Positions 35,315-58,191 of a stretch of 64,000 bases of DNA are shown in pieces (within the stretch, counting starts at the first letter, position 1; each line of letters opens with the position of its first letter). The position numbers and the translations under genes were made by a program. The stretch comes from Dimorphilus gyrociliatus (taxonomy: Eukaryota > Animalia > Annelida). Under the pieces are notes generated by a model. It had not been told where the DNA came from. It saw nothing but the letters and a program-made list of their open reading frames with translations, and searched no databases. The DNA is taken from positions 1,503,700-1,567,699 of the forward strand of contig CAJFCJ010000019.1 of the NCBI GenBank assembly GCA_904063045.1. The letters run 5' to 3'.

Positions 35315-38300
35315 TCAAAAAGCATACACGGTTCGTCCTTTTAGACCTAATAAATTGACGTCTCTTTCAAGCTTTGTCTTCTTTGTCGAATCTAAGAAAA
35401 TTTCAACAGATCGTATACCAAAGATTAGCTTTACTTGCTTCTCAAATTCATTGTATTCAAGTTGATGCTCTTTAATTGGATTCTCCAATAAGATCGTGCC
35501 TTTTCTTCCATCTGCATATGTCACATTAACAAATTTGCAGAATGGTGCTGGTACACTTGATGCTGGTGATGTGATTACTAGTTTTAAACTATTTTCTTTA
35601 ATTGCTGTTTCTTCTTCAATGATAACATTTGCCGAATCAGGCGCTTCTCCTTGGATCATTGTTTGTTTAACTGTAGCCCAAATAAAATCTTTAAAATCTT
35701 TGGCCACTTTCTCAATTTTATCAGTTGTTTTGTAATAGATATTGATTTCATCAGTAGGCAATAAACTGGCCGCTTTACGTAATTTTTGAACCCGATTGAT
35801 AATTTCTCTCGCTAAACCTTCATCAACTAGCTCTTTGGAAGGTACGGTATCCAATAAAACTAGAAATTTATTCCAAGATGTAGCCTTCAAATTACTTCCC
35901 TTTTCATCTGCAGAACTCTTTGGAACGTATGTCAATTTCATCTCATGTCTATTGATTACATGTCCATGAAGAGTTATTTCACCGGTCTCTTGAAATTTTT
36001 CTAGGTCTTTTTCCGGTAACTCGTCTACCATTTTCTTTACTTTTTGCATATCAGACTTTAACCTTGAGCCAACAACTTTAAAGTCAAGCGTCGCTTTGAG
36101 GGTAACATCATATTTCGCTTTGTCTTGACTGATGGTAAGTTTTCGAACGTTTAATTCTTCTTTTATGTGGGATTCCAAGTATAACACATTTTCTAGTGCT
36201 GTTTTTTCTTTGTGGATAACAACCACTTCCGAGAGTGGATACTTGCTGGGAAGGTTGTTTTGATCACGAATCAGACGGCCTGCTTCGATTACGCTTTGCA
36301 TATCAGCCACGGCATTTTCTATTTCGACGTTAATGAGACTTTGCTGATAGACTGGTAGCATTAAGTAGTGTACACTCTCTTTAACATCGACTTCTGCAAG
36401 GTAATTTTTCAATGTCTGATACATAAGCTCTGTTAAATACGGCACAAAAGGAGCTAATAGTCTAACAATAGTGAAAAGAACAGAATAAAGTGTTGTAAGG
36501 GCTTGTTGACAATCTTCGCTTGTAGAATCTCCCTTCAGACGCTTTCTATTCATCCTTACATACCAGTTAGTTAATTGATCGATAAATTTTAAGAGAGCTG
36601 GAACAACAGTGTATAGCCGGTAGTCTTTCATTTCTTGCTGAACTTGTTTTACCAAGCTCTGGATAAAACTAACAATCCATTTATCCATATAATTTGTAAC
36701 ATTTAATTCAGCTTTTTCATCAAATTTAAACTCTTTGCCTTCTTCACTTTCATATATCTGAATATTCTGAATTAAAAATCTATAAGCATTATACCAAGGT
36801 AGGAAAACGTCTTTTAAGATATCACGAACGCCTTTTTCCTTAAATTTTAGCTGCTCTGCCCGAACAACTGGAGAATTAACTAAATAAAGACGGATAGCAT
36901 CAGCCCCATACTTGTTCACTACTTCAACAGGATCTGGGTAATTTTTGAGTCTCTTGCTCATTTTCTTCCCATCTTCAGCTAACACCATTCCTGTGCATAC
37001 AAGATTCTTGAATGGAGGCTTTCCAAACAGTGAGGTAGAAAGAACCATCAATGTGTAAAACCAGCCCCGAGTTTGATCGATTCCTTCAGAAATAAAATCT
37101 GCAGGGAAATTCTCCTCAAAATCCTTTTTGTTTTCAAAAGGGTAATGACACTGGCCATAAGGCATAGAACCAGATTCAAACCAGCAATCAAAAACTTGGG
37201 AAATACGTCTGAGTACCCCCTTTCCTCGGTTGGAAGGAATAGTAAGATGATCGATATTTTCTCTATGAATATCTGTGATTTTTTGTCCTGTTAATTCTTC
37301 TAATTCCTTGATGCTACCTACACAAACCACTTCTTCTCCATCGTCACTTATCCATAAAGGAATGGGGTTACCCCAAAATCTGTTTCTGCTTATGTTCCAG
37401 TCTTTAGCATCTCTCAACCAATTTCCGAAGCGTTTCTCCTTCACAAAATCAGGAACCCAGTAGGTTTTTTCGTTGGAATCTAAAAGAGCCTGCCTTGCAT
37501 GCTCAACACGAACAAACCAACTATTTACACCTTTATACAGCAAAGGTGTATCTGATCTCCAGCAGAAAGGATAACTATGCTTTATTTGACTCATTTTTAC
37601 TAAACGTTTTTTATCTTTAATCATCTTAAGAATGCCTTTGTCTGCATCCTTCACATACATTCCCTTAAAATCGCTTACTGCTGCAGTGAATTTACCCGAA
37701 TCGTCAACAGGACATATTGGTTCTTGATCTTTATCAATTATGCCATATCTCAAATTTACTTGATAATCGTCTTCACCAAAGTATGGTGCTTGTTGAACAA
37801 TACCAGTACCAGATGTATCAGTTACATAACGATCACAAAGTACTTTAAAAGCGCCTTTCGCTTCTTGATCTTTGAAGTAGTCAAACATTGGAACATATTT
37901 CAAGCCTTCTAGTTTTTTTCCAAGTGTTTCTTCTAAAATTTCATACTCAGACTCCTCTTTGAATAATTCGCAAAGCCTTGTCTTCATAATGATAAACTTT
38001 TCTTTTCTAACTTTGTCTAAAACAGTGACGTATATCATATCGGGATTGACACAAAGGGAAAGATTTGAGGGCAGGGTCCAAGGGGTAGTTGTCCATGCAA
38101 TCATTGATACACCTTTCTTATCAACAAGTGGAAAAGAGACAACAATGGCTGGATCACATACATCTTTGTAGTTTAATCCAGCTTCAAAGTTTGATAGAGG
38201 GGTATTACAACTTGTTGAAAATGGCATGACCTGAAAGTATAATTTTTATAGATATTTCCTCATTTAAGTCTGTTTTCCTTACCTTAACACCTTTATACAC

Positions 38301-41377: not shown

Positions 41378-41681
41378 TTCTATTATTCTAATAAAATATT
41401 TAATAAAACTAATTAAGTTACGTAAAAAAGTTATTAAAAGTTGAAAATTACCGAAAATTTGTTGAAAATAGCTTTATAGGACAGACAATTAGTGTCTAGA
41501 CGCTTAAAACAATTGTAGTAAGTATGCTTTTTTTGTGCGCTATTGCCTTCTGGGAATTTGAAAGGGTGCGTAAGTTGAGTAAAAAACTTAATGGCCTTGA
41601 CTTATTGATGACTCATACTTCGCAAAATATTGGAATATCGCTCAGGCGTGTGCTTCGATTAAGCGCAATAGATTAAGAGTA

Positions 41682-42670
41682 ATGGATTACTTTAAAAGTT
41701 ATGAAAATTTGGAGGTCCATAGGCTAATGTTAGCAGACAAGAGTCGCATGGATGCTTATCAGTCATTTATTAATGAAAATGCAGCCCTGTTTAGCGGGAA
41801 AATTGTAATGGATGTAGGATCCGGCCTAGGAATACTATCTCTATTTTGCGCTAAGGCTGGAGCAAAGAAAGTCTATGCTGTTGAGGGATCCGAGATGGCA
41901 AAAATGTGTGAAACAATTATAAAAGACAACAACTTTTCTGATACTATTCAAGTAATTCATAAAGCTGTTGAAGATATTCAAGTATCAGATATTGAAAAAG
42001 TTTGTTTTATTTATCCATATATATAGTCTTTATTCTAAAGTTGTTTTAGGTGGATATCATTGTATCTGAATGGATGGGATTTTATCTTCTTCACGAGTCT
42101 ATGCTCCATTCCGTCTTATTTGCTAGGGATACATTCTTAAAAGACGATGGATTGATTGTCCCAAGAATAGCAAATATATACTTGAGTCCAGTAGAATTAA
42201 GAGATTTCAAGTCTAAATTTGACTTTTGGAACAATGTTTATGGTTTTGATTTCTCATCGGCTGGTGAGGCAGAAAGAAATACAACGTTCGGTCAAGCTCA
42301 AATAGAAAACATAAAAGCACAAGATTTGCTTGCTGAGGAGCAACTTGTTTTAAGTATAGACCTTAAAGCTGCAACAGAAGAAGATTTAGAATCTATCATA
42401 GGAACATTTAAGTTTACATTTAAAAAATATGGAGTTATTCACGGCTTTGCACTTTGGTTTGACTGTATATTCACTGATGGAGAAAACGAGGAAACTGAAG
42501 TAACATTAGATACAAGTCCTAACTCCGAAAGTACTCATTGGAAACAAACAATAATACCAGTACCTGAAGCATTTCTTGTCGAAGAAAATGGTGAAGTAAA
42601 CTGTAAATTGTATCTGAAGAGAGATGGTAGATCATATCGTATCGAACTAGAGCATGATTTAGATAGCTAA
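41682..42670 (+). CDS. Type I protein arginine methyltransferase, PRMT6-like, catalytic core only; 2 exons
   Basis: YFKSYENLEVHRLMLADKSRMDAY; VMDVGSGLGILS; double-E loop IVSEWMGFYLLHESML; THW loop THWKQT. PRMT6 versus PRMT1 assignment needs a phylogeny. Confidence 0.85.
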
Positions 42671-42927
42671 TTCAGGAAATTTGATAATAATAAATATTAA
42701 TTAATAAAAAAATTTGATTACTATAAAATGTTATGAATTGAGCAGTTCATTATATTGGGAGTCATGTATGAAAAAATAACAAAAACAAACTCCTCTTCAA
42801 GAGTTTGTTTTGTATTCTCAAAAAAAAATCAATGAATGAAGAAAAATAATTTAGTTTAAAAAGAAATTTTTAATACTTTTTAAACTTTATAGCTTCTATT
42901 CAGTGTCGTTACCATACAAATAAGAAC

Positions 42928-43030: not shown

Positions 43031-46000
43031 TTAGTCGTCATCATCATCGCTATTGGAAACTTCCCTATTTTGTTCTTCGCCCTGTTCGCTTTGACTGTCT
43101 TGAGAACCTCGAGCCTCTGTATCTTGTTTACTTTCTTCTTGTTCCTCATTTTCAGACGACGAGCTACTTGGAATAAACTTTGTTTGTCTATCACTATCTC
43201 CCCTATTATCATCACTGTCATTGTCACTACGATCCGAGTTATCTGAGTTAAAGGTATCTGCAAATAAAGATAGTTAATTTCTAATTAAAAATGTTAAAAG
43301 TTCATATTTCTTACTATTGAGACTTTGTGATGGTTTGCTGCTTTCCTCATTACTGGATGATGATGAATCTTCAACAAACTGAGCAGATCGAACTTTCTTC
43401 CTTTGCTTAGCGGTTAAACCATCATTTACATTATCTCTCTTTCGTTTTGTTGCCTTCTTTCGCTTTTTTCTTTCCTTTCGGGTTTCACCTTCTTCTTCAC
43501 TTGAAGCACTATTATTATCTTCTTTATTTTCTCTCTTCCCTCCCTTCTTCTTCTTCTCCGGCTTTTCTTCAATTATAGGGTCAAATTGCAATAATTTCTT
43601 GGTCTTTTCCTTAAACTTCTCTCTTTCCTCCAACATTTTCTTTTCTTTTTCTACTCTCTCTCGTTCTCTTTCCTCTTTTTCTTTCTGTTTCTTCAATTTG
43701 AGAGCTTCACACTCTTCCTCATGCTTTCTTCTTAATTCGCGCTCTTGTTCGTCTAATTTTCGAGCTCTAGCTACATGATATTGTGCTTGATTCAGAAGAT
43801 CCATACACTGTCTTGCCTCTACAGCAGCGTGATTTAAATCGAATTTTATCCTGTCACCATGTTTAGACAAGAAAATGAAAGCTTTGTGGGCAAGATCTAA
43901 ATCATCAACAGCATGTAGCACGAGTTTTAATGTTGCTTTTTCATCCTTCAAAGTTTGTGTAGCCAATTTTTGCTGCACTAGAGAAATGTTGTACAACAAC
44001 GCGGTATCTGTGGGCTTAACATGACGAGCTCTTTCCAGTACTTTACGGCAGTCTTGAAGTTTGTTTGCTTTATAATATGCCCGAGCCAGAAATAACAGCA
44101 TTTCGGTGTTATTTTGTTGCCCAAATTTTTTAATACAATTTTCATACATTTGAATAGCTGCTACATATTGGCGTTGTTCAGTGTAAATGTGTGCTATGTT
44201 CAACCAAACGTCACTAAAATCTGCTGTTGCCTCTCTAACATCTGAGAATATATCTCGGGCTTCGCTCAAGTGGCCCTTGTGAGCCAGAATACAAGCAATA
44301 CCATTGGCTGCCCAAATATTTCTTCCGTCAGCTCTGAGAACTGATTTAAAAATTGATAGAGCTCTTTCTTGATGACGTTTTTCTTTGAACTTATCTCTTG
44401 TTGGCTGGTGAAGAGATTGCAACCACACGTTACCGAGAGAGATCATTGCATAGTTATCGTCTTTAGTTGAAGGTCTTTGGATAATTCGTTCAAATTTTTT
44501 CTGTCCGGGTCCCCATTCTTGTTTACCCAAATGAAGATTACCAATAAGGGACCACGCTTCAGGGTTGTCTTGATTAATTTGAAGAGCCTCCTTGAACCAG
44601 TCAGATGCCTCATAAATTTCACCTCTATCCCGTGCCATACACCCCAAACGAAGATAACAGTCTATGTAATTCGGATGTTCTCGCAGAATATTTTTATATA
44701 GCCTTTCGGCATCTTCAGTTTTGTGAAATGCTTCATGCAATCTTGCAAGGTTATAGGTAACTGTTACAGAAATTGCACCGTAATACGAATCATCTGGACG
44801 CTTTCTTAATTCTGCCTCTATCCTTGACTGAGATTTTTCGTAAAACTTGGATGCTTGTTCTAGATCACTGTTTCGGAAATAGAGGGCTGCTATATTGTTG
44901 ATAAGTTCTGGTGGTATATCATCGCCAATTTGATCATATACATCAATAGCTTTATTATACGCTTGCAGAGCTGTTGTGACATCGTAACGTTCCAAAATTT
45001 GTGCATATTGTAACCAAGCTTCAACATCTTCAGGAAATTGATCAGTCACTTTTTTCAAGTAGCTTCTTGCATTCTCACGCTTCTTATCATCAGCATCAGC
45101 TTGTTGAGCATAAATACATCCCAAAATTTTTATTGTTTCATAGTTATTTGGAACAACTTTTAAAACTTTTTCAAAGTGTTCAGCTGCTTCCTTAAGGTTA
45201 TTTCTGGCTATGTACATTTGGCCAAGACCAAAATGAGGTAAGACATAATTTGATGGTGCGAATTGAGTGGACTGATAATAATATTGAAAAGCTTGTTCAT
45301 GATCTTCTTGAACATGAAAAACTCTCGCCATTTGATAACAACTCTCAGCTCTCATAGCTTCATTTTCAGTGTTGTGAAAAGCATGTAGAGCAAGTTGATG
45401 AGTTTTTTCATAGTCCTTCTTGTAGAAAAAATGGTTGGCTAGATGGTTAAGAACCATAGGATGTTGTTGGTCTATTGAATAAGCTCGAGATAACAATTGA
45501 ATACCATTTTTGATGCCTTCTCCAGTATTTAAATTGATATCCATGAGGGCTAAACCAACTAAGGCTCCGACGCACTTAGAGTCGAGTTTCAGTGCTCTTT
45601 CAAATGCCATTCTGGATTTCTCAGTCTTATTCAGTTTGTAATAGCAATGACCTATGCCTAATCTTACACCGGCTGGACAGTTGGGATTAGATCTCAAGGC
45701 TCTCTTATAGAAAGTCAAAGCTACTTTATACTCTTTCTTCCCGTAAGCAATAGCGGCTTTTCCGCACAAAGCTCTTGTGCAATTCGGATCACTGTTCAAA
45801 ACGAAACTAAACTGAGCATCGGCTTGATCCAATTTTTCATTTTTCATTAAACAATAAAAGGCCCGTCCTAGAAGATGGTTCTAAGGGAAGACTCATTTAG
45901 ATGCTGTTAATTATTATTTAGTAAACTACTAACCTGCTCATACATTATAATTTTATCGGCCGCCGTATACATATGCGTGGCTAAACCAAAATATTCCATC

Positions 46001-50343: not shown

Positions 50344-53300
50344 TCAGGCTGTTCCTCTTTTTAACTGTTCGCTGGCATCTCGAATCTGATTAACGCGTTT
50401 GGATAAAACTTGCTCGCGAGTTTTCATTTCCGTTATGATTACATTCTGTGCGTCGACAGCCTCTTTTAAATTTTTTACAATATCCTCAAGATTCAATTTA
50501 GCTAACGCTAACTTTGAATCTTCTACATCTTTTGCTAATTTTTCAAGGGAGGATGAATCGAGATGCTTAACTGCAGATAGTCTTTTCATTATATCTTTCA
50601 AATCCTTATCAGTTTTTTCCGTTGACGTTGTTACATTTTCAACGCTTCCAGCTGCTTGTTGAGACAAGTTGATAAGATTCTCAGTTAGTTTTTGAGCGCT
50701 ATCAGTTCTCTCAACTGCTGGCATTATATGGCTTGCATTCAGCTTTGTTACGTTGTTTGCTTGCTCTATGGCACTTGGTACTAGTTCATCAGCTTGGTTT
50801 GATAGAATATCGGATATGTTTTTCGTTGATTCCAGTTCGTCCTTTTGCTTGTTAGCCAACGTTTTCGCTTCATTTGCTATTTGAAGGGCTGAAGCAGAAT
50901 TTGTATTCGCTGGTGTCAGTTGGGTTTGAATAGACTTTGATACTCTGGTTGCATCTTCTGCTTGAGATTGGACCTTTGTTACTGTGGCTAGTGCATCATC
51001 AGCCTCTTTTTTAATTGCGGTTGATTTTGTGCCAAAGTTTTTCATTATATCAAGCATATTTGTGGCGCTATCGAAACTCTCCTTTTCCAATTGCTGTGCG
51101 TCTTTAGCAGTCGTGTGTGACGTCGATGTCTTTGAAAGTATATTTTTGGCTGAATCTGCCCTTTTCTCAGCATCGTTTTTCAGTTTCGAGGCTTCTTTAT
51201 TCGCCTCTGCAACTCTAGCAACTATGGAGGCAGCTTTACCTTTTTCTGTATCAGATTGAGCTTTAACATCACCGGATCTTGTATTCAAAGCGGTTGCTCT
51301 ATCTTGTAAAGCTTTTACGTTTGTTCCTATATCCGCAATTTTCTCCGCTTCATTCTTAGCTTCCATTGCCCGTCTCTCTGTATCAGTCGCATCATTCTTC
51401 AGTTTCTTAGTATTTTCCAGATTTGCATTTGACTCGTGTATAGCTGTGTTAGATTTCTCTTCCAATTTAACCAATTCGCTTTTTAACTCTTCATGACGTT
51501 TTACAATATCTTTTGCCACTTTTAGAGCTTCGTCCGCGTCTTTTTTAGCTTTATTTGCATCATTTCTTATCTTTTGAACTATACTTGTTGTCGATGTTAA
51601 ATCACCGGTTGCCGATGAAGATAAATCTTGCAGCTGTTTTTCAGCAGCTGTCAGAGAATCGGCTAGATTCCTTAATGTATACAATTGATCCCATACTGAT
51701 TCATCTAGCATTCGGACAGTTAAATTCGTAAGCTGTAGAGTTTCATCCAAAGTTGTTTTTCCCTCCGTCAGACACTCTTCCGCTTTAATAACGGATTTGT
51801 TTGCAGTAGCGAGAATCTTCGGTATTTCTTCATCTATCTTTACCCTAAACAATTGCATCGTACTATTCAGGCGGCTAATATCGCTAGATACTCTGTTTTC
51901 AAGTGTTGTTGCGGTAGATAAGAAGGATATTAATTTTGCCATTGATTCAACAGTATTCGATAGTCTATAAGCAAATGGTCCAAGAACTGTATTATTATCA
52001 TTTGTTTGAAGTATTTCTACGTAGTCACTAAGGTTCTGATTTAGTTCCCTAACTTTAACAACCTCTACGTCAACTCTACCGTAACACGAATCGCATACTG
52101 AAAGGGATGAAGGAATTGATTACAAGCTTATCTCCTATTTGATAATTATAAGATAATGCACGTACCCTTGCAAGTATTTGCTAAGTCATAAAAATTATCT
52201 TTGCATTCGTCGCACTTGTCTCCAACAACGTTGATCCTGCACTGGCACTTTCCAGTTTTTTGATCACATTTGCAGGTATTTCCTGCGCAATCAGCTTGTA
52301 CAGTTCCATCTTTGTTACATTTGCAAGCTATAATGTATAAAGAAAAGCTATAGCGATTAACTCTTATTTTCAAATAAATTCTTTCAACTCACGGAGGCAT
52401 CCTTCCCGAAATGGTCCCCAGAATCCAGAAAGACATGTTTGGCAGGATGAGTCCTTCCCATCTACATTAGCACTACATGTATCGCATTTATCACCCTTTG
52501 TACCATTTTTACAATCAAGGCAAATTCCTGTAGTTTCATTACAAGAGGGTGGTGAAGTAGCAGGGAACTTACAGTCACAATTAACACAAGCATTATAAGG
52601 ACTATTAGAAGTGGCTTTTCCCCTCCAATTTCCTGTTTTAGCATGGGAATATGACAATTAATTTTACATTAGTTTGTAATTTATATGTTAATTAATGTAT
52701 GGAAAAGGGATTAACCTTTAGAACAGCTTGCACACGATTTTCCGCCAACCTTCTTAGTCGCTGTACATTGACATTCCTCTACGGATGTTGATACTTCGCC
52801 AGATGTTCCCTCAACCGCTGAATCCAATCGAATATTCCGGAAGCTAATCAGTTGTGATCCGATTCTAGTTTTAACGTAGAGAGATTTCAACATTGCTAAA
52901 ACTCCTGAGAATGAGAAAGAATCGATTACAGTAGTGTCATTCAAGTACCATTGGGAATGATGTAAAACAACAGAAATCTGTTTGAATGTAGGAGTTATAG
53001 TTTGAGCTTCTAATTTGTAAAAAGTTGTAACATCCTCCCCCTTTATGTCACCAGTCATATAGATCACAGCTCCTTCATATTTTATAGGATTAGAAGATTG
53101 CACTTCAAAGGCCAATTTATTTCCATAAGCCGGTAGAAAATCCCCCGTCCACGAGGCTCTTTTAAAATCTCTTCTGCCATTGATCTCCGCCCACGGCCAA
53201 TTATCTATTTCTGAACTTGACGCTGTTAGCGTTTGCTTTTGGAAACCGGAAGCACTTTTACAAGCTGTCCCGTGACCAAAACAGAAGCATTTTTGACATC

Positions 53301-56300
53301 CTTCAGGATTGTCTGCTCTTAGATTGAAAGAATCCGATTTGCATTTCATACATTTATCTCCTTCCGTATTTAATTTACACGTGCATTTTCCTGCATTATC
53401 ACAAATTTTTCCAGTTGAACCGCTTGTGCTACAGTTGCAAGCTCTGTTTAATTTTAAGAGTTATCTTAAAATTGCTGTTTTTTATTATTATCCTAGACAT
53501 ATCAATTCTTTTATTTGATTTACTTACGAGCAACCATCTGCCGAAAACTTAAAGAACCCTTCTTCGCATTTATCACACATTCTTGATGTTATTGTTGGTT
53601 TACAAGGACATTGACCACTATCGGCGCATTGTGATCCTGTACTTCCATCCTTATTACAATTGCACGATGAGCAACCTTTTCCAGTTGAAAAACCCCAATG
53701 AAGGGGTAGGCAGGCTTTGCAACGTCTTTCAGTTGTGTCAGACGATGTGGAATTTTCGCCAAATTTGGCAACATTTGTTCTACAGGGACACTGTCCAGTC
53801 GTATAATCGCAGACACCGGTTTTAGAACCGAACGAATCACATTCGCATGCTGTTTGAACAAGTGAAAAAATATTGTTTTGGGATTGGGAATAAAACAGGG
53901 ATGTTCCTCAATTTAAACGGCGGAACCGTTAATTTCGTCGAATGGTCCATACTGGGTTAACGGTAATCGTGATGATGCTGGAGAATCGACCAGAGCCTCT
54001 TCTAACAGTTGTACTCTTTTCTCAAGAACGGATTTATTTGGACCAGTTGGTGTTGGTAACTTTCTTCTGTTTACCTGTGCAGCCGTTGATTTCACTTTCG
54101 GTGTTACTTGAGTTGGTTTGCTCGTTAAGATTTTTGTTGGTAGAGTTCGGCGATCAGTTTGAATAGCTTGCACGTCTTGATCGACTCCAACTTGGATGGC
54201 TCGAGCGTCTTGTTCGACTATAGCTTGACTCGCTGTCGATGCTGTGTCCACTTCAATTTGAGATGCGGTTGTCTTGAGATCATCTACTCGAGGTGGTGTT
54301 GGCGTTAATTCAATAATCTCCGAAGCTTGGCTTGCTATTGACTTTGTCTCAATGGCGCTCGGTTCAACTTGAAGCTTCTTTGCTTCAACAGAAGGTGTTG
54401 CTTGCGATGAAGCGTCCCTTGTATATAGTTCTTTAGCTTGTGTCATGTCTATCGACATTCGGTCGCTAAGACTTAAGTAGTCTCTGAAATCAAAGGAGTT
54501 TGATTCTGAAGGTAGAGAAGAAGGCCTTTCGGTAGGTGGAGGGGGAGGCTCTTCTCTCTCTTCAGAGTTTTTAGGTCGTTGAATGGGAGCTGGCATTAGA
54601 TTCAGTTTTAAAGATGGTTCAGATACGAATGATATTGTGTCATTGCTTATAGCCTGCTCAGGAGAATTATCTTTATGAACTCGCTTGATCTCAGATTCGT
54701 TAAAGTTGAATGCTCCCAAATAAACGTCTTTACTATAGAGTGGACTTTTAGGATCCTTTAAACCCAAATCTGAGGCCATTAATTCTTGTCTTTCGTATGG
54801 TTGATTGCCCCTACATTGTTCTCTGCACTTTTTCCATAGCAGGATAATGAGAATGATGAGAACAATCGCTAATCCAATGATTATGGCTATAAGTACCCCT
54901 GTTTGTAAACCACCTCCAGACGACTCATCTTTTTCCCCAGGATATGAACCTACTGTGACGAAATTAACGTTCCGAATCTTTCCAGGGGGATCTAATACAT
55001 CATTTACAAAGAAATGAACTTATTTTACTACTTACGTTGGCATCCGCTCGATGTGAAATTAAAAAAGCCTGGACGACATACTTCGCACATTCTACCCATA
55101 ACTCCAGGCTTACAAGGACATTGGCCACCTTGGGGAGAACACTGATGGCCTCCGGTTGTTCCAGTTTCATTGCATGCACAGGGAAGGGCTCCATTAACCA
55201 TTTCCGCCATTATTCCTCTTTCCATCGTCTTACAATCTGGATCTTGCAAAGCCGCATCCCTGGTACTTAAGGCACTTATTCTCTTTGTACAATCTTTTAA
55301 TTTTTCTTTCGACGTTATATCTTATAGATAAAAGACAAACATAGACATACTTATCAATGACTGATACAACTAAACGGAAATTCCGTGCCTACTTACTTGC
55401 AATATAAACAGTACTATTTATCAATGAAGGCATATATAATATCGCATCTATTAAAATTTCTGAAGCGGCATCATCTTTAGATTGACCAACTTTTACTTGA
55501 GCTGAATACTGACATCTAGCGTCTATAGTGACAGTATCGCTGCTTAACCAGGATTGAGCTTGTCCACTTGTAAGGTTTGTCAAAGAAAAGGATTTTAGCA
55601 GACCAGCTGGCTGTGAACAAGCAGGTGTAATGGTTTCGTTTGTACGATTTTTATAATAATCTAATGATATTGCTGCATCGACGCTTAGGACGCTTAATTC
55701 AAGGGTAACTTCTGCCCAAGAATTTGTAACGTTTGTTGAATATCGAAGTCCTAGATTGTATTCCCAAAGAATCATCGTTTGACGTTCTATACCGTTTACA
55801 TTGTCAAATACAGCCGTTTGTCCAGTTTTGCAGACAGCAAATTGTCTTCCGGTATATTTAACTTCAGATGATTTAATTTTTGATGTAAGTACACAAGTAC
55901 TACTTTTCTCAATAGGCTGAGAGTACAACCCATCGATATAAGGCACGAATTGATTTTTACCAATTGTTGAACAGTTTCTTCCCGATAAACCTAGTCTACA
56001 GGTGCATACACCCGAAACTTTATTGCATACTAAAGAGGCTGATCCCCCCCTATCGCAGGCGCAATCTCTGCAATCATCCGTTGTCAACTGTGGATAGGAA
56101 TAGTAGCCTTCTTTACAGATTGAACAACTCCGACCACCAATATTTGCCTTACAAGGACATTGTCCATTCTCGTAATTGCATACATTACTAGAGCCAACAG
56201 TTCCAAGTGTTCTACAGGCGCATTCCTTACAAACACCTTTTGATTCTGGAAGTAGTAGACCATAGTACTGGTCCTTACATCTATCACAACGTCTTCCCGT

Positions 56301-57967
56301 GACTTGTACCTTACAAGGACACTGTCCAGGTAAGACGGAAAGATGACTACATTTGGTATCGTTATTGACGACTCCACTTAATTCACAATCGCAGTCCAAG
56401 CATACTCCAGGATCGTTTAGATTAGCGGATATATTACGATAGTAGCCAGCCGTACAACTCTCGCAATTATTACCTATAGTATTATGGGTACAATTATCGC
56501 AGACCCCTCTGTTTAGAGCCTTATCATAATGACAAGAAGAAGCGTGATCGTTGCATTCACATTCTGTTTTAGGATATAATAAAATAAACTAGTATTAAAT
56601 AGTAAATAAAGAATTAGATGTTTACTTTCACATTCGTTAGCAGTTCCATCGGGATATGGTAAGTAATTACCGGCTTTCCAGGGTCGATTGTTGTATAAAG
56701 GTAAGCATTTCTCGCAACTTATACCGTCAGTATTATGGGAGCATACGCACGCCATTTTCCCATTATCTTTCCTACAATATTTCGCATGTAGATTACATTG
56801 GCAACCGGCAATTAATTGAACGTCATTTATCCCGTAGAAGTATCTTAGTAAATCTTTCTTGTCTTGCCTAAATTCATAGCCATCGGTATTTGGTGCTTCT
56901 AATCTTAACCTTAGATCGGTGAACGTTAAGAAGCTATTCAATTTAGTTTTATCGAAAGTTTCGTATAGTTTCTCGTAATTTGTTAAAGATGTACCTAGAA
57001 ACGGTTGGAAGCGGTCGGCGACTACTTCGAAATAAAGTCTACCATTCGAAAATGGTAATCTATGAGAATATTTCTGAGTACAGACAACCGTATCCGGTTT
57101 ATCATTAGGTATTTGGGTAACGGAGTCTTTAGGACATTTTTGGTTATAGATTTGTAAAGGTTCCCACGTTTTTCCAAAGTCATCAGATTTTTCAAGTACC
57201 GCTATCCTAGGTCTAGACGTAGTAAATTGAAAATAAAAATCTGTTTGCAATTCGTAAGCATGATCCATAGAAATTGTAATATTAGTTGCCAAAGGAGTTG
57301 GATAGTCTATCCAAGTTTTAGACTGCCACCATGTCTTTTCATTTCCAGATCCAATATTTGGTATCGTATCGTACAAATACTCCAAGGGATGTTTTTTATC
57401 ATTTTTCGAAGCGTCACATTTATCGCAAAAAGTAGACGCCTAATAAAAAACAATAAATATTTGCGTAAGTTTTATTTTTTTTTTAAAAAAACAAAAAAAA
57501 GGAAAGAAAAAAAAAATTCATCATCGATTTCGGTTATTATTCAAGCTTTATTCTATTTATCGATTTCGGTTTAGACAGCAATTTTTTCTTTTTGCAGCTG
57601 TTCCAATCAACCAATAGACACGCGTGCGTTTTTATATATGTATATACCAATATATAGATATATATACTTTTACGTAAATAGAGAAAATGTAATAAAAAAA
57701 AAAAAAGAAAAGAAGAAATAAATATAAAAGTGTTAATTTAACTCATACAATAAGGCAATTAATGAGAATCTTACCTGATTAATACAATAATCCGCTGGTG
57801 GTGTACCACAAGTAATATCTGGATCGATTGTTACATTAAAGTTAGCATTTGCTTCCCGTAGTAGATGTGATGGTTCGCTTATACAAGCAAAATATTTAAT
57901 CTTCGAATTTACGACAGTTTGGCAAGGATTACTCTGTTATGATAAACAATTACTAATTAATTAGTGA

Positions 57968-58003
<36 letters not shown>

Positions 58004-58191
58004 TATTTCTATACATAGAATTCATTATATTTTTTAAATTATGACTCTTTTGCAAAGTACTTGGTTTTTTTTATACGATTATCAATTAAAAAAGTCAATT
58101 TTTTACTTACGAGTATAGTTCTGGGAGCTGTTTCGCATTTTACAAAAGTGACGCCTAAACAGCATAGAATGAGATTTATCACAATAAACAT
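50344..58191 (-). CDS. Laminin beta/gamma-like chain: signal peptide, LN, LE repeats, beta-type LF-like domain, LE, gamma-type L4-like domain, LE, ~530-aa coiled coil
   Basis: Signal MFIVINLILCCLGVTFVKC; LN motifs KTWWQS and SRPRIAVLEKSDDFGKTWEPLQIY; many LE repeats; LF-like insert ending AEMVNGALPCAC; L4-like insert after CQKCFCFGHG; terminal heptads. No LG domains. Confidence 0.88.
53913..54991 (-). CDS. Putative alternative terminal exon inside laminin intron 53850-55035: TM helix plus ~306-aa cytoplasmic tail
   Basis: Phase-1 donor at 55035 (TGCCAAC|GTAAGT) joins in frame to AG at 54992, or to tandem CAG/TAG about 40 nt further. Product: ...SGCQHPPGKIRNVNFVTVGSYPGEKDESSGGGLQTG-VLIAIIIGLAIVLIILIILLW-KKCREQCR...DEINGSAV*. 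Confidence 0.75.
57971..58000. repeat. (TA)n microsatellite in laminin intron 1
   Basis: Visible directly in the sequence. Confidence 0.95.

Follow-up and report, generated by a model that had tools for sequence, protein, structure and literature searches.

The DNA studied here, a window of 64,000 nucleotides (nt) from a Dimorphilus gyrociliatus contig (CAJFCJ010000019.1, positions 1,503,700 to 1,567,699) in whose numbering all coordinates below are given, carries a laminin gene on its minus strand. The domain order of the full chain is signal, LN, LE, LF-like, LE, LE, L4, LE and coiled coil. One intron between two LE exons (55035-53850) is 1,186 nt long, whereas the RNA-confirmed neighbour introns measure 62, 65, 68, 76, 83 and 84 nt, plus one of 335 nt. 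An earlier reading of the letters alone (hereafter the sequence-only reading) had proposed that this intron hides a terminal exon for a transmembrane (TM) laminin isoform; it gave the length correctly as ~1.19 kb but overstated the excess, which is about 15 times the confirmed neighbours and not 20. The same-strand open frame that it described as nearly filling the intron is present (359 codons, 54989 to the stop at 53915-53913), and so are its three acceptors in phase with the donor, AGs at 54992, 54953 and ~54897. The donor (CAAC/GTAAGT after 55036) is in phase 1, and the distal acceptor (AG at 53851-53850) continues the laminin chain as GCQ/PCECD. The features on which the argument turns are the following.

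55036-55320, minus strand: exon 5, a complete 8-Cys LE that ends ...FNFTSSGCQ; its phase-1 donor is common to both isoforms.
54953-55035, minus strand: the proximal intron, 83 nt, spliced out in the TM isoform (RNA joint 55036->54952).
53913-54952, minus strand: the coding part of the TM/tail exon, with a spacer of 17 amino acids (aa), the TM helix, a cytoplasmic tail of ~305 aa and the stop at 53915-53913.
54834-54896, minus strand: the TM helix, predicted from hydropathy and by AlphaFold2, followed by KKCREQCR.
54714-54773 (approximate coordinates), minus strand: the membrane-proximal tail block, DLGLKDPKSPLYSKDVY, which reads FGLDDPNGPLYSNNIY in Bulinus and is weakly recognisable in Owenia.
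53916-53942, minus strand: the C-terminal motif FDEINGSAV, of class I PDZ-ligand type (S-x-V-COOH).
53850-53912, minus strand: the 63-nt spacer from the stop to the distal acceptor, without a poly(A) signal and of equal length in a close relative (below).
53528-53849, minus strand: the following LE exon, the first specific to the full-length chain, also entered unspliced by RNA of the TM exon.

Two sequencing runs act as cDNA, X2 (labelled '?') and X4 (labelled 'DNA?'): their contigs lack any small intron, over which the bin depths agree with an absence of coverage. DNA makes up run X3, from which the window itself probably derives; a coral metatranscriptome run (X1) yielded a single unspliced 251-nt piece and is uninformative. 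The two kinds of junction that the sequence-only reading had named as a check are both present in the RNA contigs. The joint 55036->53849, which skips 1,186 nt and restores the normal chain at GCQ/PCECD as had been foreseen, has a depth of 40 in X2 and 17.6 in X4; the joint 55036->54952, which skips 83 nt (cacag/TA GGT), has a depth of 16.3 in X2. From the X2 contig joints, with an upstream exon depth of 46.9, ~29% of the flow from donor 55036 enters the hidden exon. The X4 depth over this exon is 4-9, and the proximal joint is not listed for that run. Among the acceptors offered by the earlier reading it is the second (54953, there given as ~54950) that is used in RNA and not the first: 54992 has no RNA joint and is out of frame in the relative through a 1-nt indel between 54992 and 54953, which leaves only 54953 in frame in both species. 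With its exons joined, the TM isoform reads as one open frame of 1,181 aa.

The open frame is not a product of chance, since the probability of 346 consecutive sense codons at this composition is ~5e-10 and the longest open frame across 2,000 shuffles was 230 codons (mean 76). No in-frame ATG was found upstream of the TM helix inside the exon, so the helix is translatable only within the laminin reading frame. Two other routes were considered and rejected. Stop-codon read-through into laminin fails, as the tail frame is not in register with the LE exon and closes at 53589; recursive splicing at 54953 fails, as the joined sequence recreates no GT donor.

A search with the tail against 5.8 and 1.8 billion proteins returned one close relative, whose genomic-type contig (L001) is collinear with window positions 57447-52387. 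The second match of that search, the multi-kinase protein P0002, resembles only the composition of the TM helix and is not a homologue, and exact-sequence look-ups of the 288-aa window open reading frame (ORF) and of a Haliotis rubra protein described below (X2) gave no record. Identity to L001 is 72-82% in the laminin exons, 32-49% in ordinary introns and 67.7% in the hidden exon, where all indels are multiples of three. The test of selection that the sequence-only reading had suggested gave a proportion of nonsynonymous differences (pN) of 0.129 and of synonymous differences (pS) of 0.754 (saturated) for the hidden exon; the constitutive laminin exons have pN/pS of 0.09-0.24. Within the exon, conservation is highest (pN 0.078) in the 58 codons ahead of the first ATG, which encode the spacer and the helix; the helix itself is ~90% identical in L001. 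The 83-nt intron is 74.7% identical, its 3′ half nearly invariant. The exon is thus kept in the relative, contrary to the loss by which the earlier reading could have been overturned, and on these comparisons it is as constrained as the laminin exons, under strong purifying selection that extends to the part before the first ATG.

The search for orthologues was seeded with the LN-LE-LF part of the relative and then with the best match, and orthologues were found at 36-45% identity. Gene models of full-length ones, 1,775-1,912 aa long, exist for cnidarians, echinoderms, amphioxus, molluscs and a leech. Short forms with the same ectodomain LE, spacer, TM helix and tail occur in Patella caerulea, Haliotis rubra (isoform X2), Bradybaena similaris, Bulinus truncatus (two models) and Owenia fusiformis, and eight other sequences (five gastropod species, Owenia and the relative) end in [YF]DE[IVL]NGS[AML]V. 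In Haliotis rubra the two isoforms coincide up to ...SSSGC/T, after which X1 continues into LE and Laminin_B and X2 into the TM tail. The membrane-proximal block GL.DP..PLYS..[IV]Y is common to the window and Bulinus (BLASTP of the cytoplasmic parts only, E 1.5e-5).

The exon was also sought at the orthologous intron of other genomes, as the sequence-only reading had advised, and is present in two. The Owenia TM exon lies 1 kb past the orthologous LE exon with its phase-1 donor and 3.4 kb ahead of the next LE exons; in Haliotis rufescens, the same phase-1 intron of an annotated full-length gene holds a frame of 294 codons that encodes a TM helix and ends ...YDELNGSLV. The Owenia locus (L004 10001-48130) is annotated as two genes, an LN-LE-TM gene that ends at 38130 and a Laminin_B/LE/coiled-coil gene from near 43034, with LE exons 41546-42680 outside both models. 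An Elysia marginata 'laminin subunit beta 1, partial' (P0142, 1307 aa) has a strongly hydrophobic stretch mid-protein, at residues 530-563; this gene model possibly reads through the TM exon.

The 21 hydrophobic residues (54896-54834), the KKCREQCR cluster and the long tail all lie where the earlier reading had placed them. The helix has a Kyte-Doolittle mean of 3.74 over 19 residues, and AlphaFold2, run on the exon alone, predicts a helix over residues 14-48 at a predicted local distance difference test (pLDDT) score of 94-96, with the remainder mostly below 50. Judged by hydropathy and AlphaFold2, the isoform would be a type I single-pass membrane protein, with a signal peptide, a helix of ~21 residues and a positive-inside flank. 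The tail of ~305 aa is predicted to be largely disordered, with two moderate helices in the AlphaFold2 model (residues 222-268 and 304-322), and a Pfam search of it gave no match. Its C-terminus, -G-S-A-V here and -G-S-[LM]-V in gastropods and Owenia, fits a putative class I PDZ ligand with a free S/T-x-hydrophobic end. Gln-centred repeats at 54060-54330 (tail residues ~205-295, in a predicted helix) read ASQIEVD, AIQVGVD, AIQTDRR, PTQVTPK and AAQVNRR; these Gln-anchored, LC8-like repeats are kept in the close relative and absent from the mollusc and Owenia tails.

Against L001, two blocks of the locus are nearly invariant: one runs through the 3′ half of the proximal intron into the initial 17 nt of the exon, and the other is the last 12 codons. 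An inverted-repeat search found that they share a perfect 13-nt complementary core in both species, at distances of 1,017 and 1,023 nt, and the pairing extends to 34-35 bp (54974-54936 with 53956-53921). The two arms are as follows.

54936-54974, minus strand: RNA arm E1, composed of the final 21 nt of the proximal intron (polypyrimidine), its AG acceptor and the initial 17 nt of the TM exon.
53921-53956, minus strand: RNA arm E2, which encodes QYGPFDEINGSA and is complementary over 34 bp to E1, ~1 kb away.

In E2 there is no synonymous change in 11 codons, though pS is 0.75 elsewhere. The helix appears in the minimum free energy fold of the whole 1.3 kb with a mean pair probability of 0.94 (0.89 in the relative), and the duplex gain is -23 to -25 kcal/mol, compared with -4.2 +/- 2.7 for shuffles. 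Only four distinct 13-nt inverted pairs spaced 200-1,300 nt exist in the entire window. There is, then, conserved complementarity of distant boxes beside a regulated splice site. A second, imperfect inverted repeat (54889-54909/55003-55023; 21 nt, 76% complementary) encloses E1 and matches the first TM-helix codons to the 5′ part of the proximal intron; its intron arm is unconserved in the relative.

From these sequence and folding data we hold that the E1-E2 helix probably sets the splice choice. It would bury the proximal 3′ splice site and loop out the TM exon, and the looping would leave the donor and the distal acceptor ~120 nt apart, near the usual intron length of this genome, so that the distal site would be favoured. 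Until E2 is transcribed the proximal site would be free, and afterwards the full-length splice would be favoured; the isoform ratio would therefore depend on the speed of splicing relative to elongation. Long-range RNA helices are known to set splice choice, as conserved intronic pairs in Drosophila and conserved complementary regions in human (PMC2724269; PMC8052449). The likeness lies in complementary boxes ~1 kb apart that flank an alternative segment, one of them overlapping a splice site; unlike those pairs, the worm helix has one coding arm, which specifies the conserved C-terminal peptide, it lies in a genome of ~70-nt introns, and its effect on splicing is a prediction.

Some results tell against such a switch. 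Both arms are invariant in the two species, hence there is no covariation, and the sole changed pair, at the edge, is broken and uncompensated. Owenia, whose exon has kilobases of intron on either side, lacks an evident helix (-20 against -14.9 +/- 3.4 kcal/mol, not significant). It is conceivable, if in our view rather doubtful, that the complementarity is real and has another role or none in splice choice, as an ADAR substrate, in mRNA localisation or stability, or as a by-product of conserved splice signals and peptide alone. The invariance of both arms and the Owenia result fit such a reading, as do the contents of the arms themselves: E2 encodes a conserved peptide and E1 holds 3′ splice-site signals. 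Peptide conservation, however, cannot explain why synonymous change is absent from the 11 codons at that pS. The 34-bp complementarity of two conserved blocks, with a pair probability of ~0.9 in both species, would be left unexplained as well, and the helix covers the alternative acceptor exactly.

Taken together, the best explanation of the locus, and one we consider likely, is that a single phase-1 donor (55036) serves two competing acceptors, with the proposed helix as switch and a proposed function at the cell surface. The distal acceptor (53850) would give the secreted, trimer-forming chain. The proximal one (54953), 83 nt from the donor, would add a coding segment of 1,040 nt and give the 1,181-aa type I membrane protein, with LN-LE-LF-LE outside the cell, one TM helix, and the tail end ...FDEINGSAV inside. 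A laminin short arm at the cell surface would so be tied to a PDZ scaffold, and the TM form may act in cell-matrix or cell-cell recognition, as GPI (glycosylphosphatidylinositol)-anchored netrin-G does in chordates; it may enter the nodes of laminin polymers, block them, or bind a partner like the netrin-G ligands. The central proposal of the sequence-only reading, that one locus yields either a secreted chain or a signal-LN-LE-LF-LE-TM protein, is thereby borne out by the junction, the selection on the exon, the intact frame and the TM orthologues in gastropods and Owenia.

Several points weigh against this explanation. The TM isoform is known here from RNA joints and sequence, not at the protein level, and its PDZ binding and laminin- or netrin-G-like binding are putative only. 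The proximal junction occurs in one run (X2), where the contigs meet by the assembler's 30-nt overlap alone. The corresponding intron holds no TM frame in Nematostella (166 nt), in Branchiostoma (279 nt), in Acanthaster (2.1 kb) or in the leech Helobdella (repeats only); as sampled, the exon looks like a feature of molluscs and annelids. Finally, the RNA of the TM exon shows no poly(A) site and carries on into the exon that follows. An unbroken X2 contig runs from 54952 to 53820, across the stop and the 63-nt spacer and 30 nt into the following exon, so that while the hidden exon itself was correctly recognised by the sequence-only reading, on RNA and selection alike, its description as terminal is not supported. 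Since RNA continues past the stop, five or more exon junctions follow it, which might expose the mRNA to decay.

The last observation bears on the idea that the proximal acceptor is unproductive and merely lowers the amount of full-length laminin, through a premature stop, a long 3′ untranslated region and decay, with little TM protein made. RNA that passes the stop, the many junctions downstream and the lack of a poly(A) signal within 63 nt are what such a variant would show. We nonetheless judge it quite improbable: protein-level constraint equal to that of the laminin exons is unexpected for a poison exon, as is the retention of the C-terminal and membrane-proximal motifs from annelids to gastropods, and ~29% of the flow is present in steady-state RNA. 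As to the 3′ end of the message, the earlier reading had itself cautioned that no AATAAA was visible after the stop, and neither AATAAA nor ATTAAA occurs in those 63 nt. Cleavage and polyadenylation within the intron, of the LaNt type, were not seen, with no AATAAA/ATTAAA before 53515, and a minor poly(A) branch may have dropped out of the assembled contigs. Past the TM-exon stop, hexamers of poly(A) type first occur in the small intron 53444-53527 (AATAAA at 53515 and 53486, ATTAAA at 53452); if this intron is retained, the TM mRNA might end there.

The downstream exons (52166-53849) are 4-5 times deeper than the upstream ones (55036-57438) in both cDNA runs: 253.7 against 46.9 in X2 and 71.6 against 17.6 in X4. 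This excess may come either from 3′ bias or from a further start of transcription, comparable to the internal promoter of LAMA3A. It is one reason to consider two overlapping genes, an upstream TM gene and a separately started, N-truncated laminin, with the full-length join as minor read-through; the Owenia annotation divides the locus exactly so. We give this very little credence, because 3′ bias alone can explain the depths and because the joint 55036->53849 has a depth of 40 out of 46.9, so that most upstream transcripts go on downstream. The downstream part opens in mid-array (PCECD) and has neither a start codon nor a signal peptide, and full-length orthologues are modelled from cnidarians to the leech. 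Neither the depth excess nor the question of the 3′ end removes the evidence for a selected coding exon. An independent nested gene, a 288-aa cytosolic protein from the ATG at 54779 with its own intronic promoter, can be set aside: the relative retains the ATG, from which gene callers derive a product of 290 aa, but the 58 codons upstream are more strongly conserved than the rest of the exon and are joined in RNA to the laminin donor, and the mollusc and Owenia proteins hold ectodomain and tail in one chain.

The other parts of the gene are these.

58111-58191, minus strand: exon 1, with the start codon (58191) and the signal peptide MFIVINLILCCLGVTFVKC, then ETAP; the frame is open through all joins.
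57774-57933, minus strand: exon 2, where the LN region starts; its 3′ end comes from the RNA joint 57438/57774, its 5′ end is placed by an AG and the open frame.
56626-57438, minus strand: exon 3, the LN domain and first LE, bounded by RNA joints (Pfam Laminin_N, E 2.7e-32).
55397-56563, minus strand: exon 4, LE repeats and the LF-like globular insert, bounded by RNA joints (EGF_laminin, E 1.6e-22).
50344-53443, minus strand: the remainder of the full chain, with LE, Laminin_B (L4), LE, a coiled coil of ~530 aa and the stop, from ORFs, Pfam and RNA joints to 52097.

The join of exons 1 and 2 lies outside the RNA-covered stretch and was deduced from sequence. The 335-nt intron after exon 2 (57439-57773) contains a repeated or low-complexity element (57516-57712) with a depth of 930 in X2, at which many DNA contigs end. 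The next gene downstream is U1-70K, on the opposite strand.

The chain has a signal peptide, LN, LE arrays and a C-terminal coiled coil and lacks LG domains, the combination by which a beta/gamma-like chain (a group we take after Fahey & Degnan 2012) is recognised. Its Laminin_B insert is matched in Pfam at E 2e-12; the LAMININ_IV_B match is weak in the window (21 bits, against a Pfam cut-off of 27), and the Acanthaster, Strongylocentrotus and Branchiostoma orthologues are recorded as having that domain. Among solved chains, the LN domain is closest to netrin-G1/netrin-G2 (E 1e-56), then to laminin gamma1/netrin-1 (1e-28 to 1e-29) and beta1 (1e-20 to 1e-22). In a quick maximum-likelihood tree of the LN-LE regions (35 rows), 18 beta/gamma-like rows from cnidarians to amphioxus form a clade with the two netrin-G rows (Shimodaira-Hasegawa-like approximate likelihood ratio test, SH-aLRT, 98), separate from laminin beta, gamma/netrin-1, alpha and usherin. 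Netrin-G is nested within the bilaterian part of this clade, and the window gene groups with its leech orthologue (SH-aLRT 98). The tree thus identifies the gene as a laminin beta/gamma-like chain, a member of the clade in which chordate netrin-G originated; published work likewise places netrin-G in the laminin beta/gamma-like group (PMC3516229; PMC10084454). Netrin-G is described there as chordate-only and GPI-anchored (PMC3516229; PMC10084454). By this phylogeny the same clade would have yielded membrane-tethered LN-LE proteins twice, a GPI-anchored gene in chordates and a TM isoform in annelids and molluscs. The two tethers are probably of independent origin, because the amphioxus orthologue has no TM exon in the intron concerned.

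Netrin-G1 and netrin-G2 (laminets) are accordingly the nearest comparison: membrane-tethered LN-LE proteins of the same clade with the closest solved LN. They are separate chordate genes with LN and three LE, a GPI anchor, no LF insert and no cytoplasmic tail, whereas the worm product is an isoform of a laminin gene with an LF-like insert, a predicted TM helix and a 305-aa tail of PDZ type, and so is not itself a netrin-G. Usherin (USH2A), like the worm isoform, combines an LN-LE ectodomain with a single-pass TM helix and a C-terminal class I PDZ-binding motif; it is unlike it in being a separate gene and a giant protein with LamGL, FN3 and LamG, and its LN falls outside the beta/gamma-like clade in our tree. 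Laminin chains are textbook secreted proteins, and to our knowledge the only gene-internal laminin short forms are the LaNt proteins, which are secreted and vertebrate. LaNt alpha31 (LAMA3) is a short, secreted LN-LE protein made by intron retention between LE exons with intronic polyadenylation, and it shares a promoter with the full chain, so that splicing sets the ratio (PMC9788559). As in the worm, the promoter and N-terminal exons are those of the full chain and the C-terminus is encoded in an intron. LaNt alpha31, however, derives from a vertebrate alpha chain, has a short unique C-terminus and is polyadenylated in the retained intron; the worm form belongs to a beta/gamma-like chain and uses a conserved 346-codon exon with a TM helix and long tail, reached through a proximal 3′ splice site, with no intronic poly(A) site seen.

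The sequence-only reading knew of no description of such an isoform. A literature search for transmembrane or membrane-anchored laminin returned 'laminin receptor' phrases only, and no paper on a transmembrane laminin isoform was found in the library searched; the NCBI automatic annotation, however, lists a Haliotis rubra 'laminin subunit beta-1-like isoform X2' with the TM tail. The isoform switch therefore appears undescribed in the literature, though gene models exist in public annotation, and the conserved 34-bp long-range helix is new in this analysis.

The TM form would be a new way to couple a laminin short arm to the cell surface and the cortical scaffold, and with its conserved cytoplasmic tail it is kept in at least two phyla. 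It raises a testable question: is there a protostome membrane-bound LN-LE protein for cell-cell or synaptic recognition? A bolder version, which we offer tentatively and think unlikely as a whole, is that annelids and molluscs have their own 'netrin-G', a tethered LN-LE isoform wired to PDZ proteins via ...DE[IV]NGSxV, with its dosage set here by a co-transcriptional RNA-helix timer. If that were true, LN tethering would be recurrent or ancient, and a netrin-G-like adhesion system would exist outside chordates. The RNA helix would provide a simple, mutable handle on the isoform switch, and the locus an example of how a genome of ~70-nt introns may cope with an intron of 1.2 kb.

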